Origin: Rhodosorus marinus CCMP1338
Lineage: Eukaryota; Plantae; Rhodophyta
DNA: 64,000 bases
Reading direction: 5' to 3'
Assembly: GCA_029953675.1 (NCBI GenBank)
Contig: JAMWBK010000007.1
Location: forward strand, 1,984,001 to 2,048,000
Positions 51,101 through 64,000 of the stretch are shown here, piece after piece; the stretch's first letter is position 1, and every line of letters begins with the position of its first letter. Below the pieces are notes generated by a model. That model was not told where the DNA came from and did no database searches. It was given only the letters and a program-made list of their open reading frames with translations. The translations under genes were made by a program, and so were the position numbers.

Positions 51101-53431
51101 ATGGTGGATTCAGCGACTGTGGGGCTGATTTACTCGGCCGTGATTGGAATTGTTGTTTTCCTGATATTTTGGGTACTGTTCGAGCTGTTGAGGTGTTCGA
51201 GACCGCACATCTTCCAATTCAGGAAGTGGATCCAGGACTACGAAGAAAATTTCAAGGAGTTTCGAGATGAAAATGGGGAATTTGTGAGCTATCTACCGAA
51301 CCAACCGCCCCGAGGTTGGTTCAAATGGTTTTCTACTTCCATGAAAGTGACTGATCACGAAATCCAACAGTACATAGGCTATGACGCTAGTCTATATTTG
51401 ATGTCGTTGTGGAATAAGATTATCTTCTTCAGCATACTTGCAGGGATAACGTGCATTATTCTTATACCGGTCTACGCTACGGCCCCCGGTCAAAAGGCTG
51501 CTGGAGGGGTTGCTCTTCTCTCCATGTCAAACTTGGAGACCGGCAGCGCTCGATTTTGGGCGACGTTCATTGTGGACTTCGTCCTTGCTTATATATCTAT
51601 CATATACGCCTTGATAGAGTGCCGTTCCTACGTTAAGCGCAGAGAACAGTTCAGGGCTGAGAATATTGCCGCGAATTATGCAGTTTCTGTCATGGATTTG
51701 AGGAAGGACAGGAACACCGCTGAACTAGTTCGTGAAGATTTTGAGAAGGTGCTCCCCGGAGAAGTGGATGGTGTTCAACTAACGTACGGTTCAGCGTACC
51801 TACGGAAGAGGTTCAATCTGTACAGAGCTGCTCAAAACCAAAAGGAAATAGCACAGTATCAAATTGACAATGGCAAAGACGGAAAGCGTCCGCGGCATCA
51901 TACAGTACCCTGTACATGCTGCTGCACTGGCACGGTCGACTCACAGGAATACTGGAGCGAGCAACAGGCCAAGCGTGGGGAAGAAATTGAAACAGAGCAG
52001 GAGAAGATGGACCCAAAACTTGTTAAACCTTGCGATTCAGCGATTGTTGTGTTCAAGACGAAAAAGGCTGCCTCGGTCGCAGCGCAAACCAAGCTTTTCG
52101 GGATGCCGCTGGACTCATACACTATTATGAGGCTCCAAGCGTTTAAGTCTGTACACTGGCACGGGATGCGGCTGAGCTACTTTGCGGGGCTTGGGTTTAG
52201 CATAAACCTTTGGGTCTGGCTGGCTGTTATCCTCATTTTGTGGGTGCCCATCACTACTGCGATTATGAGTTTGGCGAACTTGGAGACACTTGCCGAAATA
52301 GACGCGTTTTCATGGCTCGCAGATATTCTCAGTGCGTCGGAGGCGGTGAAGGGTCTGATTGAAGGGTTCCTTCCCCCGGTTATTACGATCGTTTTGGCCC
52401 TACTGCCGGCTATCCTTATCGTGATGTTCGCTGGGCTTGAGCGACACCCATCGCTTGAGCTGGCGCAGAACAAACAGCGGACGATGCGCTTTATTTTCCT
52501 TTTCTTCGCCTCGTTCCTGTATGTTGTGCTGGCAGGAACGGCTCTTGAGTACCTGGACATTCTTATTCAAGACCCTACGCAGATTGTGTCGTTTTTGGCA
52601 AAGGCCATTCCAGAACAGGCAACCTTCTTTTTGAATTATGTGCTGACTGCTTGCTTCATTGGGAACGCTCTCGCTCTAAGCCAAGTCGTTCGCATGATAG
52701 TGATACCCCTCTTCAAGAAACTTTTCAAGACCCCTAGACAGAGAAAGGGAGCTCAGACGTTCGGGGCGTTGTTCAACTATGTCGTGTTTTACAGTACTAC
52801 CGGACTGCTGAGTACCATCACCATCATATACTCTTCGATGGCACCGTTGATCAACGTATTTGCGGTCATATACTTCTTGCTGACGTACGTTGTTCAGAAG
52901 CACAACCTTATCTACACGCATTACTGCAACTATGAGCACGGCGGCAGTATGTTCTGGGGCAACGTACAGTGGAACTTTGTTGCCTTGTACCTGAAGACGC
53001 TGACGATGTGCGGAGTTATGGGACTCAACGAAGCGATCGGACCTGCCATCGTCTCAGCGATCAACCTGATCCCTTTGCTAGTTATGCATGTATATGTGAA
53101 CAAACGCTATGGAACCGTAGGCTGGCACGGCTCCTTGGAGATGGGCAGCGGCAAGCCTGCACGGGAGGAGGTCAATCCGAATTACGTGCCTCAATACAAG
53201 ACTCCCGAGCTCTGGAAGATTTCAGATGTTCCTCTATTGAAGGAACCCATGGACGACTTAGAAACCGAGTTTTATGATGCGGAAGAGGGCGCGCTGAAGG
53301 ACGACCTAGAGAGTCAGAAGATCGGAGAGCCAGAGTTCGAAGTTGTTGAGGAGCAACCTGCTGGAGGCGAAGAAGCTGTGGCTATGCCGGAAGAAGTAGA
53401 CGCCAATGTAGAGCAGACAACTTCAGTCTAA
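51101..53431 (+). CDS. OSCA/TMEM63 (CSC1/ERD4) channel, intronless copy, 776 aa
   Basis: FWVLFELLR, DASLYL, LIPVYAT, SMSNL...RFWA, AANYAVSVMDL, TVDSQEYW, AIVVF, VHWHGM, IEGFLPPVI, AIPEQATFFLNYV, YSSMAPLINVF. Confidence 0.95.
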   Translation: MVDSATVGLIYSAVIGIVVFLIFWVLFELLRCSRPHIFQFRKWIQDYEENFKEFRDENGEFVSYLPNQPPRGWFKWFSTSMKVTDHEIQQYIGYDASLYLMSLWNKIIFFSILAGITCIILIPVYATAPGQKAAGGVALLSMSNLETGSARFWATFIVDFVLAYISIIYALIECRSYVKRREQFRAENIAANYAVSVMDLRKDRNTAELVREDFEKVLPGEVDGVQLTYGSAYLRKRFNLYRAAQNQKEIAQYQIDNGKDGKRPRHHTVPCTCCCTGTVDSQEYWSEQQAKRGEEIETEQEKMDPKLVKPCDSAIVVFKTKKAASVAAQTKLFGMPLDSYTIMRLQAFKSVHWHGMRLSYFAGLGFSINLWVWLAVILILWVPITTAIMSLANLETLAEIDAFSWLADILSASEAVKGLIEGFLPPVITIVLALLPAILIVMFAGLERHPSLELAQNKQRTMRFIFLFFASFLYVVLAGTALEYLDILIQDPTQIVSFLAKAIPEQATFFLNYVLTACFIGNALALSQVVRMIVIPLFKKLFKTPRQRKGAQTFGALFNYVVFYSTTGLLSTITIIYSSMAPLINVFAVIYFLLTYVVQKHNLIYTHYCNYEHGGSMFWGNVQWNFVALYLKTLTMCGVMGLNEAIGPAIVSAINLIPLLVMHVYVNKRYGTVGWHGSLEMGSGKPAREEVNPNYVPQYKTPELWKISDVPLLKEPMDDLETEFYDAEEGALKDDLESQKIGEPEFEVVEEQPAGGEEAVAMPEEVDANVEQTTSV

Positions 53432-59685: not shown

Positions 59686-61018
59686 ATGGTCAATACAAAG
59701 AAGAAAATTTCGTGGCAGACGGCCAAAATCACTGGCCTACCAGATGACTGTGAGATCGACTTGGAAACGGTGGCAGTGACAATTTGCGGCGGAGGAAACG
59801 GGGCCCACGCTGGCGCGGCGATGTTTTGCCATCAAGGATGCAAGACGAGTATGTACCTGTCTCTGAAGAAGGAAGCGGCTAAGATGAAACAAGGAATCGA
59901 GCAAGGTGGTATCAAATGTGAGCAGCTGATTTTGGACGAGCACATCCAATACCAAGGGGCACCAGAAGTGAGCAGCGATCCGTCAATCGTGCGTGAGAGC
60001 GATGTAATTATAATCCTTGCACCTGGATTCGCACACGAGAGCATTCTTCGCGAGATCAAGCCGTTCTTGAAGGATGGTGCACTTGTCGGAGCGCTCCCTG
60101 CGCATGGAGGTTTTGATTTGGTTGCAAGGCATGTCCTGGCGGAGAGAATAGAAGACGTTACCGTGTTCGGCACTGTCTCACTGCCGTGGGCGGCAAGGAT
60201 TGCATCGTACGGCTTGAGAGTGGAGATACTGGGAACAAAAGAAGAACTGCCCATGAGCTGTCACCCCAGAGTCCCTCGGGTTCCAATTGTGGAGCTCTTC
60301 AATTCTATGTTCATCGGGACTACATTTCCAATGGGCAACGACTTTCTGGAGATTACTTTGTGGCCGGCGAACAACATTATTCATCCGGTAAGCTATCGTG
60401 CAAAAAAGAACCTCTCCTCACTGGGAACGAAGGCTTATCACCGCAAACCTGTGCCTTCTCCTGTTGCAGGGCATTTTATATGGCCAATGGAAGAACTGGG
60501 AGGGCACCCCTCTCGCTGAGAAGCCCTTATTCTATGTTGGACTGGACGATTTCGCGGCTTCAAAACTGCAAGGCATGAGCGATGAAATTCAGCAAGTAAA
60601 GATCGCCGTAGAGAAAGAGCTGGGACTCACACTGGCCGTGCCGGAACTAAGTGGCTTCATGCTCCAGTCCTATGGCCGAGAGATTGGGGACAAATCATCG
60701 CTAAAGAGGATCTTCCAGACCAACCCAGGATACCAGGGCCTTACCCATCCTATGAGGCAAACTGGCGAAGGAAAGTACGTGCCCGACTTCTCCAATAGAT
60801 ATTTAACCGAGGACCTCCCACATGGACTTGCCGTCCTCCGAGGAATAGCTGGTTTGGTCAACGTACCAACGCCTTGCATGGATGAAGTCCTCAGCTGGGG
60901 GCAAAACGCCTGCGGACAAAAATATCTGGACAATGGTACAATGACAGGAAAGGACGTCTCCCATTCGGGAGTTCCCCAGCGATTCGGCTACCACCAAGTA
61001 TCGGACCTAATCTTCTAG
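59686..61018 (+). CDS. NAD-dependent opine dehydrogenase (octopine/tauropine/strombine dehydrogenase family), 416 aa; 2 exons (intron 60388-60469)
   Basis: Rossmann motif VTICGGGNGAHA, IIILAPGFAHESIL, LPAHGGFD, SLPWAARI, NNIIHP|GILYGQWKNWEG.P...PLFY.G and PDFSNRYLTEDLPHGL...GIA.LVNVPTP.MD.V..W.Q. Confidence 0.9.
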
Positions 61019-61595
61019 TACTGGTAGTACTTATCAGAATTCATGTACTATAACTTTGCAATCATTATGGTCGTAATAAAGACTGATGTGAAATATGGAT
61101 TGATTCAATCAACATCCCAGACGCTTTCGCGTTCACACAAATGAAAATTGCCCCGTAAAGGCAAAGAACTCGGCAACATTCGCCAATTTCATTTGGCCAG
61201 GAAAATTGGATGGATATCGAGGGATCGCATTTTCCTGGGATTTTGACGAGCTATCTCTGTTGTTTTTTTTTCGTGGTTGGGGAGGGTGGGGACGATGGTA
61301 GGGAGAGAATGATGGAAGTTAAGTTGGGAAAGCCTGTGGAGGAACAGAGCAGTTTAAAAGTTCTTAGGATGAGCTGGTTTTGATTGTCGGCTTCTGTGGC
61401 CTTCTCGGTTGTAGCTGCCAAATTTATTTTTTTTGGTTTTGGAGTTTTCTACTTGCCTGTCTGTGGTCTGCTTTTTTTTATTCGGAACTGCGGTGAGGTT
61501 TTCGAACTGAGCGTTTGCGGAAGGGAGCTTTCCGACAGGAACTTCTTTTGCGGGTAGAGAACAACTGAAAGCGTGGTAAATTTTGAAAGTCAGAA

Positions 61596-63956
61596 ATGGC
61601 AGCGTTTGTATGGGGTTTTCAGCTCGATAGTCTGGTGGAGCCAAGGAACGGATTGAATGTTTGTCTGACACGTCCACTGACTCGAATTGCGCCCAGGTGC
61701 CAGGCTGCGAAAGGACAGACTGGGTTGACAAGTTCTCGTCCTCAAGTAGATAGTACGGATACTTCTGGAGCGGTGCTGAAAATTAGCGATGTGCTGCTGC
61801 AAGCTGGTTCTAGGGACTTGCTATCGTTCGACGAATTGAAGGTAATGCCTAGGGACAGAATTGGCTTAGTGGGCCCGAATGGAACTGGCAAGACAAGCCT
61901 TCTCCGGGCGATTTCTGGCGAGCTTCCGATGGCGCAGGGTCGGATAGCATTGCTTCCTGGGAAAACGATTGGGTACCTCCCGCAACAGGCGGTTAGTGGC
62001 TCAGAGCGATCCGTGTGGGATGAAGCGTCGTCACAGATGCATAGACTGAATGCGGCAGAGAAGGACCTAAGGGCAGCTGAACTTGCCGTGAAAGAAGATC
62101 AGTCATCTCTGAACTTGACGTGGTTGGAAAAAGCTTCTATTGACTTCGAGGCTGCTGGCGGCTTCAGCAAGGACGAGAAAATCGGGAATATGCTCACTGG
62201 ATTGGGATTTTCGCGGAGCGACTGGTCTCGCAAATGCTCAGAACTTTCTGGGGGATGGGGTATGCGTGTTGCTTTGGCCCGATTGCTGCTCTCAGAACCG
62301 GACGTACTACTTCTAGACGAGCCTACCAATCACCTCGATGTACGCACGAAAGCGTACTTGCGCTCATTTCTAATGCAGTACCCGTACTCCATTGTGGTTG
62401 TATCCCATGATGCATTGGTACTCAATGACCTGAAGAGGATTGTTGATGTCCGTGGAGGGAAACTAGAGTTCTACACGTGCAACTACTCCAGATTCCTGCA
62501 GATTAGAGACCAAAAGGACGAACAAGCGGTGAAGATAAGAGAAAAACAGGACGTGCAGGTGGAAAAACTTGAGGGATTCATCACCAGATTCGGAGCGAAA
62601 GCGACGAAGGCGTCCGCTGCGAAGAGCAAGAAAAAAGCACTCGAAAAGCTTGAGTCAAAGCTCGTTGAAGCTCCAACCCCAACAGAAGGTAGAAGGGTAG
62701 GTGTATACATGCTCTAGTCCAATCTACCGTACGTACGCGTTTTCGCTAACCCGCAATCCCCTGCCTCGTGCTCACCGCTTAGGCGAAGCTGAATATTCCT
62801 ACGGCTCCTCCAAGCGCTAGGAAATGTGTTGAACTTACCGATGCAACCATCGGGTGGCCTGATGGACCCGTCCTCATTGAGAATGTTTCCGTAGTTCTCG
62901 AGCGTGGTGAGAGGTTGGCCATTGTGGGCAAGAATGGTTGCGGAAAGAGTACCTTGATGCGCACACTGGCGGGACTGCTTCCGTTGCAGTCTGGAAAGCG
63001 TGTTCTCGGGGACGAGCGAGTTTCTATTGGCGTGTTTACGCAGGACTTGGCTGCTGATCTACCATTCGAAAAATCACCATTGGAATACAGTGAAAAACTT
63101 GCTCCGGAGAAAACTGTAGCTGAAATACGAAACGTGCTCGGTAGTCTTGGACTTTCTGGAGATTCTGCGCTTCGCGAAATCCAGTTCCTTTCTGGCGGCG
63201 AGAAGGCCAGGGTTGCCCTTGCTTCGTTTGTGATCTGCAGGTACGTGCCTTGCTGGAATTCAGTGGTACCCTGTCTAAGATGCTAACATGGCATGTCTTA
63301 TTTTTCTGGACCAGCTACAATGTTCTCATGTTTGATGAGCCCTCAAACCATCTTGATATGCAGACGGTCGAGGTTCTTGTAGAAGCCTTAGCAACATTCG
63401 ATGGAGCAATGGTCCTGGTAACGCACGACAGACGTCTCGTTGAGAAAATCGCGACACGAGTACTGGTCGTTGAGGAAGGAGGTAGCACACGCCTCTTTGA
63501 GACCCTGAATAGCAAGGTAATTGTTTCTTTTTTGAGGGCGGCGGTCTTTTTGTGAACAGCTGACTGAACGAGGCCTCATTTCGATTCGTGCATTGCGACT
63601 AGGCACTGTCTATGGTAACGGATTTATCGTCAGACGACGTTTCAAATCGTATGCTTCTGAAGAAGTCAGGAGAGGCTTCAGCAGAAGATCTCAAGATGGC
63701 TGAAGCTGAGACTGAGAATAGGCGGCAGAAAAAAGGGGCGGAAAAGGCAAGGAGACGGCTTCCAAATGTTGAGAAGAAAATTTCGAGCTTGGAGGAGACC
63801 ATGGCATCCCTTGAGGAAGATATGCTCAAATTCGGGGACCAAGCTGAGCGCCTAGCTGAGCTCATGGAGAAGCAGGGGGCTCTTCAGGCCGAGCTGGATG
63901 GCCTCTATGATGAATACGAGAGCTTGGAGGCGCAGCTGTTCCCGGCGACAAGCTGA
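61596..63956 (+). CDS. ABC-F family ATPase (ribosome-associated), plastid-targeted; 4 exons (introns 62697-62782, 63241-63314, 63517-63602)
   Basis: Two NBDs (GPNGTGKT/LSGGWGMR/LLLDEPTNHLD and GKNGCGKST/LSGGEKAR/DEPSNHLD), an inter-domain linker RFGAKATKASAAKS and a C-terminal coiled coil. No TM segments; MAAFV transit peptide. Confidence 0.93.
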
Positions 63957-64000
63957 GGAGAGTATACGTAGCCTAGTAACTATCTAACTGTAATGTATTT

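Follow-up and report, generated by a model that had tools for sequence, protein, structure and literature searches.

The window analysed here is a stretch of 64,000 nucleotides from the red alga Rhodosorus marinus CCMP1338 (positions 1,984,001 to 2,048,000 of JAMWBK010000007.1, a 2.2-Mb contig of assembly GCA_029953675.1). Close to its right-hand end, on the forward strand at 59686–61018, lies a two-exon gene for a predicted opine dehydrogenase (OpDH). Exon 1 (59686–60387, codons 1–234) encodes an N-terminal extension, the Rossmann domain for NAD(P) binding and the first part of the substrate domain, through His233-Pro234. It is followed by an 82 nt spliceosomal intron (60388–60469; GT...AG, phase 0, between Pro234 and Gly235) and by exon 2 (60470–61018; codons 235–416 and a TAG stop), which encodes the helical Octopine_DH substrate-binding domain. 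All features of the gene lie on the forward strand. Splicing yields a coding sequence of 1251 nt and a protein of 416 residues; the frame without splicing terminates within the intron. The start codon is the first in-frame ATG past an upstream stop, and an AATAAA hexamer read from the sequence 57 nt 3′ of the stop codon (61075–61080) may serve as polyadenylation signal. The translation product is 100% identical over 416 amino acids to ‘hypothetical protein NDN08_004788’ of R. marinus at NCBI, whose gene call covers the identical span of 1333 nt.

The gene is expressed and the splice is real, because a MMETSP transcript from another Rhodosorus strain (P0002; 416 amino acids, 90% identity) is continuous over the splice junction (..NNIIHPGILYGRW..). 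Another Rhodosorus transcript from MMETSP, P0005 (277 amino acids), keeps the intron matching 60388–60469. Its product would end soon after the catalytic histidine and lack the remainder of the substrate domain. The isoform may reflect noise in splicing or a regulated, unproductive form of it.

A paralogue with 66% identity, NDN08_007832, is encoded on a separate 3.5-Mb contig of R. marinus. Its intron, 84 nt long, occupies the identical phase-0 site between ..IHP and GILYG.., and the intron is therefore older than the duplication that separated NDN08_004788 and NDN08_007832. Orthologues are present in the Porphyridiophyceae Erythrolobus madagascarensis and Timspurckia oligopyrenoides, while R. 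marinus belongs to the Stylonematophyceae. The GC and GC3 values of the gene (0.51 and 0.57) match those of the adjacent genes for an OSCA/CSC1-like channel and an ABCF protein, and the flanks, which comprise these two genes and those for a cyclin and an RsmB methyltransferase, are eukaryotic. The gene is thus a long-resident nuclear gene of the alga. About 100 close homologues (38–44% identity) from Chloroflexota/Anaerolineales metagenome assemblies might point to contamination from bacteria, to a pseudogene in decay or to horizontal transfer in the very recent past. However, this explanation is already contradicted by the shared intron site on another large contig, the occurrence in two red-algal classes, the composition and surroundings of the gene, its intact open reading frame, its transcripts and the retention of every catalytic residue, and we consider it scarcely conceivable.

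Residues 218–382 of the protein match the Pfam family PF02317 (Octopine_DH) over profile positions 3–150 of 150, with E = 6.9e-33 and 114 bits against a cut-off of 30. NCBIfam holds no model for opine dehydrogenases of the PF02317 type. The best relative of solved structure is octopine dehydrogenase (OcDH; EC 1.5.1.11) from Pecten maximus (3C7A/3C7C/3C7D/3IQD), which is homologous over its full length (E = 3.5e-70 over residues 28–411, about 33% identity), whereas CENDH from Arthrobacter scored far weaker in the same search against solved relatives (E = 4e-17). With a red-algal profile the E-values improved to 2.6e-93 for Pecten OcDH and to 5.9e-23 for CENDH. CntM-type enzymes gave no sequence match with the single sequence or with the profile, and no nicotianamine-synthase-like or CntL-type partner gene was found near the gene.

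An AlphaFold2 model, computed from an alignment of 44 homologues (mean pLDDT 95.2, pTM 0.93), displays the two-domain fold of OcDH with a visible beta-alpha-beta Rossmann pattern. In a Foldseek comparison with PDB, the OcDH structures 3IQD and 3C7A lead (TMq 0.85 and 0.81), followed by CENDH (1BG6; 0.69) and then by the staphylopine and pseudopaline dehydrogenases (about 0.6–0.65). CENDH and the CntM-type enzymes belong to the same Pfam family and have the same overall fold, but they are far more distant (23% and 12–14% identity). The dinucleotide-binding motif GGGNGAH (GxGxxG/A; codons G35-G36-G37-N38-G39 at 59788–59802) is common to OcDH, and G35–N38 are invariant across the 44 homologues. 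The OcDH motifs IIHP...PLFY and RYLTED are also found, the former within IIHPGILYGQWKNWEGTPLAEKPLFYVG, which begins at residue 231 and crosses the splice junction, the latter within RYLTEDLPHGL, which begins at residue 344. By alignment, His233 (60382–60384) corresponds to the catalytic His212 of Pecten OcDH, and in the codons R344-Y-L-T-E-D349 (60797–60814) Arg344 and Asp349 correspond to Arg324 and Asp329; all three are invariant in the sequences compared. In OcDH, His212 and Asp329 form a dyad and Arg324 acts as ‘NADH sensor’ (PMC2924402; for residue roles see also PMC6033044).

As the Pfam match, the match to Pecten OcDH, the fold and the conserved catalytic residues agree, membership in the opine dehydrogenase family is secure. 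Judged from sequence and model, the protein is almost certainly an opine dehydrogenase, and the gene is genuine, belongs to a known enzyme family, looks ordinary and is uncharacterised. An earlier note on this DNA had described an intact spliced gene for a 416-residue opine dehydrogenase with characteristic motifs and no obvious targeting peptide. Gene model and motifs were all reproduced, and the nearest characterised and solved relative is indeed an animal enzyme of the mollusc/annelid type. The statement that no algal gene had been assigned also stands, as our literature search found no paper assigning a red-algal opine dehydrogenase gene. As to targeting, the 27-residue N-terminal extension is conserved in the red-algal homologues (W10, G17, E23 and D25 are invariant), is ordered as strand-helix-strand in the model and does not resemble a transit peptide. 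A C-terminal SKL-type (PTS1) signal is absent. The protein is probably cytosolic. The structured extension is one feature that sets it apart from Pecten OcDH; another is a single extra residue in the helix-kink-helix region (WPANN versus M-SYS).

Further differences from Pecten OcDH concern the substrate and cofactor pocket, which we describe in Pecten numbering and for which the comparison took in 22 animal sequences. Glu142 and Trp278, the side chains of which bind the guanidinium group of L-arginine in OcDH (PMC2924402, PMC6033044), are replaced by Val164 and Phe297. Glu142 is found in all 22 animal sequences; the position is Val or Ile in red algae, Gln in bacteria and Thr or Ser in choanoflagellates. 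Trp278 is near-universal (21 of the 22 animal sequences), with Tyr in choanoflagellates. Gln118, which binds the carboxylate of pyruvate and the replacement of which by Ala cripples OcDH (PMC6033044), is His140 in the window protein. It is conserved in 19 of the 22 animal sequences, with Arg in bacteria, Pro in choanoflagellates and Ala or Cys in the other red algae. Met332 is replaced by His352, and His occurs at this position in red algae and choanoflagellates only. In place of Met206 and Tyr208, which make backbone contacts in OcDH (Met and mostly Lys in animals), the window protein has Trp226 and Asn229. The changes W278F, M332H, M206W and Y208N are signatures of the clade.

Taken together, the amine pocket is remodelled in a way common to no characterised enzyme. 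Because the guanidinium-binding residues are changed, arginine is an unlikely substrate, and an assignment as octopine dehydrogenase (EC 1.5.1.11) was rejected. With Val or Ile in place of Glu142, the distal pocket loses a negative charge, which would be compatible with an anionic distal group on the amine. The cofactor side is altered as well. Asp37, at the end of Rossmann strand beta2, aligns with Lys62 (codons K61-K62-E63, 59866–59874); the position is Lys, Arg or Ala in red algae and Asp in all 22 animal sequences and in most bacteria, including the Chloroflexota-like group. A change of this type classically moves the preference from NAD toward NADP. By inference, Lys62 is a possible determinant of cofactor preference. 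The two R. marinus paralogues differ from each other near the pocket (S165G, A169T/A170T, A228V).

The reasoning on positions 111/198 and D34/D36 is based on opine dehydrogenases from hot-spring metagenomes (mODHs; PMC10787698). These enzymes were considered as possible characterised relatives of the Chloroflexota clade and rejected, as they are Arthrobacter-CENDH-like; their reference sequences, taken from Table S1 of that paper, carry errors from optical character recognition.

The position of the protein within the family was analysed by neighbour-joining trees (200 bootstraps, Kimura and ScoreDist distances, 118–162 sequences). Five red-algal sequences are monophyletic (bootstrap 82–100), and their sister group consists of choanoflagellates and other eukaryotic sequences (bootstrap 69–100, varying with the data set). 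This assemblage adjoins the roughly 100 Chloroflexota/Anaerolineales proteins, one of which is encoded in a complete genome of 3.27 Mb. Animals form a separate clade (bootstrap 62–100) with the red-algal sequences outside; the deep backbone is weak (bootstrap ≤57). In an exhaustive search of representative sequences, which returned 433 clusters at E<1e-30, the red-algal cluster is isolated (762 bits versus 435 for the next).

The nearest clade contains homologues from the choanoflagellates Monosiga, Salpingoeca and Microstomoeca and from the green alga Tetraselmis striata (41–47% identity). The choanoflagellate proteins share Trp226, Asn229 and His352 with the window protein and likewise lack Glu142 and Trp278; they differ from the red-algal ones by Tyr at 278, Thr or Ser at 142 and a retained Asp37. 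T. striata has the red-algal signature in part (F/N/Y at 206/208/332) and Asp at 142. The N-terminal extension of the red-algal proteins is absent from all of these. More homologues were found in diatoms (Conticribra, Thalassiosira exigua), dinoflagellates (Pelagodinium, Apocalathium) and the euglenid Ploeotia. Mollusc-type enzymes (OPDH) of Diplonema papillatum and Euglena gracilis have already been published, and a horizontal transfer involving bacteria was suggested (PMC8611851). Compared by this published description and not by sequence, they represent the same subfamily in non-animal eukaryotes. Opines of omega-amino acids (beta-alanopine, tauropine) were detected in cells in that study, and the protist enzyme, unlike the window protein, has a glycosomal signal. 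The supplements of the study contain, in text form, no red-algal or choanoflagellate taxa. The designation as an ‘animal-type opine dehydrogenase in an alga’ in the earlier note is therefore right at the level of the subfamily, but the trees place the gene beside choanoflagellates and not inside the animal clade. Nor is its occurrence in an alga as unusual as the note suggests, given the homologues in a green alga, diatoms, dinoflagellates, euglenids and Diplonema. By sequence the family appears widespread in marine protists and bacteria.

Some protist homologues are fused or extended: P0013 (613 amino acids), P0174 (527 amino acids), P0175 (1041 amino acids) and P0176 from Ploeotia vitrea (804 amino acids). 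In P0013, the opine dehydrogenase is fused to an adenylate-kinase domain (PF00406), an arrangement that would couple opine formation with energy-charge buffering. In the Chloroflexota sequence CP070785.1 (L002, 4174–9185), the opine dehydrogenase gene is located two genes downstream of that for a 663-residue protein with PF02931, near a SulP transporter. PF02931 is the ligand-binding domain of pentameric ligand-gated channels, a curious neighbour given the possible GABA-type substrate (see below). No operon hinting at a substrate was seen around this homologue. The contig of P0007 (L001), which looks eukaryotic and has its genes called in fragments, gave no information.

Tauropine, alanopine and strombine dehydrogenases of animals (Cellana grata; the alanopine dehydrogenases of Fusitriton and Sipunculus; Arenicola, Marphysa) have 34–37% identity to the window protein and the same catalytic residues. 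In contrast to it, all of them retain Glu142, Trp278 and Asp37 whatever the substrate. Grouping in the trees follows taxonomy and not substrate, so that the substrate cannot be inferred from similarity in this family.

Information on the possible product comes from published metabolite data. An extract of R. marinus was profiled by 13C and 2D nuclear magnetic resonance (NMR), and GABA-alanine (277.5 µg/mL) was a major constituent, as was gamma-aminobutyrate (GABA; 220.7 µg/mL) (Scandolera et al. 2018, PMC5867640). The identity of GABA-alanine was confirmed with synthetic 4-((1-carboxyethyl)amino)butanoate, prepared from GABA and 2-bromopropanoate; its lactam was also present, and alanine, lactate and succinate were abundant (PMC5867640). 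Chemically, GABA-alanine is an opine: reductive condensation of pyruvate with GABA yields it, and beta-alanopine and tauropine are its homologues. It has never been recognised as an opine before. The text of the NMR study contains neither of the words opine and pyruvate, and the metabolites listed there for R. marinus include no second opine (PMC5867640). Our search found no paper linking GABA-alanine to a gene, also among those citing the compound. A non-enzymatic origin during the acid hydrolysis used for the extract is chemically implausible, since no reductant is present.

Because R. marinus accumulates GABA-alanine, its two PF02317 paralogues are the natural candidates for the synthase, and the chance that NDN08_004788, NDN08_007832 or both have this function may be put just short of even. 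The protein would act in the cytosol as an opine dehydrogenase (EC 1.5.1.x) with two domains and NAD(P)H as cofactor. The amine and the keto group of pyruvate would condense in the cleft between the Rossmann and the helical domain, and NAD(P)H would donate a hydride to reduce the imine. In this step His233-Asp349 would relay protons, and Arg344 would hold the cofactor by its pyrophosphate. The product would be an N-(1-carboxyethyl) secondary amine. The likeliest amine would be GABA, giving 4-[(1-carboxyethyl)amino]butanoate, and we hold with slightly less than even confidence that GABA is the main physiological amine of the window protein. More specifically, and tentatively, we propose that NDN08_004788, its paralogue or both are opine dehydrogenases specific for GABA. 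Such an N-(1-carboxyethyl)-GABA synthase would have a new EC 1.5.1 activity, would possibly be NADPH-linked and would serve constitutive storage of solute or nitrogen, in contrast to the redox balance of anaerobic muscle. A role as constitutive nitrogen and carbon store or compatible solute, combined with that of a redox sink, would be favoured over a purely anaerobic end product because the pool is large in aerated, illuminated cultures and because of the possible shift to NADPH. The data show the structure and expression of the gene, its family, fold and clade, the conserved catalytic residues and the altered pocket; which way the reaction runs, which amine and cofactor are used and what role the enzyme has in the cell are inferred.

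Several points weigh against GABA as the substrate. The substrate is not readable from sequence in the opine dehydrogenase family, and the red-algal clade consists of uncharacterised enzymes. The characterised tauropine dehydrogenase (TaDH) of animals retains Glu142, so an anionic omega-amino acid can be accommodated without loss of this residue. The two paralogues differ near the pocket, so the activity could belong to NDN08_007832. An opine dehydrogenase of the ornithine cyclodeaminase type or an enzyme of the carboxyethyl-ornithine synthase type could also make GABA-alanine. As Gln118 is replaced by His and is variable across clades, even the way in which the keto acid binds is not assured. 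Finally, the extract was obtained by hot acid hydrolysis of biomass from open ponds of 20 m3 (PMC5867640), so that bacteria may have contributed to it and the identity of the strain is open to doubt.

An enzyme that accepts another amine or a broad range of them (alanine, glycine, beta-alanine or others) has to be weighed against GABA. It would then make opines of the alanopine or strombine type as a redox sink in the dark or under hypoxia, as happens in marine invertebrates and has been proposed for Diplonema, and GABA-alanine would be due to the paralogue, to a side reaction or to some unrelated source. In family, fold and catalytic residues the protein matches alanopine and strombine dehydrogenases, alanine, lactate and succinate are plentiful in the R. 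marinus extract, and Asn229 occupies the aligned position of Asn198 in Arthrobacter CENDH, an enzyme with a preference for neutral amino acids. In addition, Diplonema has a single mollusc-type OPDH alongside several opines (PMC8611851). However, neither alanopine nor strombine is among the major metabolites of R. marinus while GABA-alanine is, and at E142, W278 and Q118 the pocket is unlike that of any characterised alanopine or strombine enzyme, which leaves such a specificity unlikely, though worth serious attention. We regard it as improbable that the enzyme works mainly in the oxidative (catabolic) direction, releasing an amine and a keto acid from imported or stored opines, or that it uses a keto acid other than pyruvate, such as glyoxylate or 2-oxoglutarate. 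The reaction is reversible in the family, the pyruvate ligand Gln118 is His140 here and Ala or Cys in other red algae, and Lys62 in place of Asp37 gives a hint that the preferred cofactor has changed. Against this, the opine of R. marinus carries a 1-carboxyethyl group, which is derived from pyruvate, and the characterised members of the family overwhelmingly prefer pyruvate.

The earlier note had favoured yet another amine, taurine, and hence a red-algal tauropine (D-rhodoic acid) dehydrogenase using pyruvate and taurine; we found no support for this assignment and judge it very improbable. Tauropine and tauropine dehydrogenase activity have reportedly been found in a florideophyte red alga, but our literature search returned no relevant paper on tauropine dehydrogenase or rhodoic acid in algae. 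The window protein belongs to the same broad subfamily as the animal enzymes (35% identity to Cellana grata TaDH, A9CQJ6, P0161), the loss of Glu142 would not disfavour a sulfonate, and taurine closely resembles GABA and beta-alanine in structure, which makes some activity of the window protein with taurine plausible. However, Cellana TaDH, the only characterised tauropine dehydrogenase retrieved, nests with gastropod alanopine dehydrogenase (bootstrap 95), apart from the red-algal clade. It retains the animal pocket without any of the red-algal changes and has no residue specifically in common with the window protein. We know of no sequence determinant of taurine specificity. Within the limits of database coverage, no florideophyte or bangiophyte homologue was found in the top 120 of the red-algal profile search, and no florideophyte, bangiophyte or cyanidiophyte homologue was among the top matches of the profile and exhaustive representative searches. 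Neither taurine nor tauropine is among the R. marinus metabolites identified by NMR, which are major metabolites only (PMC5867640).

If GABA is the substrate, the orphan metabolite GABA-alanine, which is named as the active compound in an R. marinus extract on the market, would receive a gene, and the few opine dehydrogenases in use for making chiral secondary amines would be joined by an enzyme specific for omega-amino acids. The window protein or its paralogue would then be the first enzyme to be characterised in a protist opine dehydrogenase subfamily with a remodelled pocket that comprises red algae and choanoflagellates, with related green-algal sequences. The distribution described above suggests that mollusc-type opine dehydrogenases are not an animal speciality but a family widespread in marine protists and Chloroflexota, which bears on how animals acquired them. 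The analysis further sets right the connection with red-algal tauropine, which was tempting but lacks support.

Turning to the surroundings of the gene, the putative osmosensitive cation channel of the OSCA/CSC1 type is encoded 6 kb upstream by a single exon (51101–53431, forward strand; 776 amino acids with RSN1_TM, PHM7_cyt and RSN1_7TM). The region between 56214 and 59685, about 3.5 kb long, contains no annotated gene or open reading frame of more than 150 amino acids and is unusually long for these gene-dense surroundings. Scans of the window and of this gap for Rfam families, tRNAs and tandem repeats found nothing. On the other side, the ABCF-type ATPase (61596–64000, forward strand; 704 amino acids according to the NCBI call) starts 578 nt downstream and has at least one intron, near 62718–62914. 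An N-terminal extension of about 70 residues ahead of its first ABC domain could be an organelle-targeting sequence. Rhodosorus marinus is also mentioned in a paper on horizontal transfer of the msp130 biomineralisation genes (PMC11878542), and msp130 may be a second supposedly metazoan gene family in this alga.

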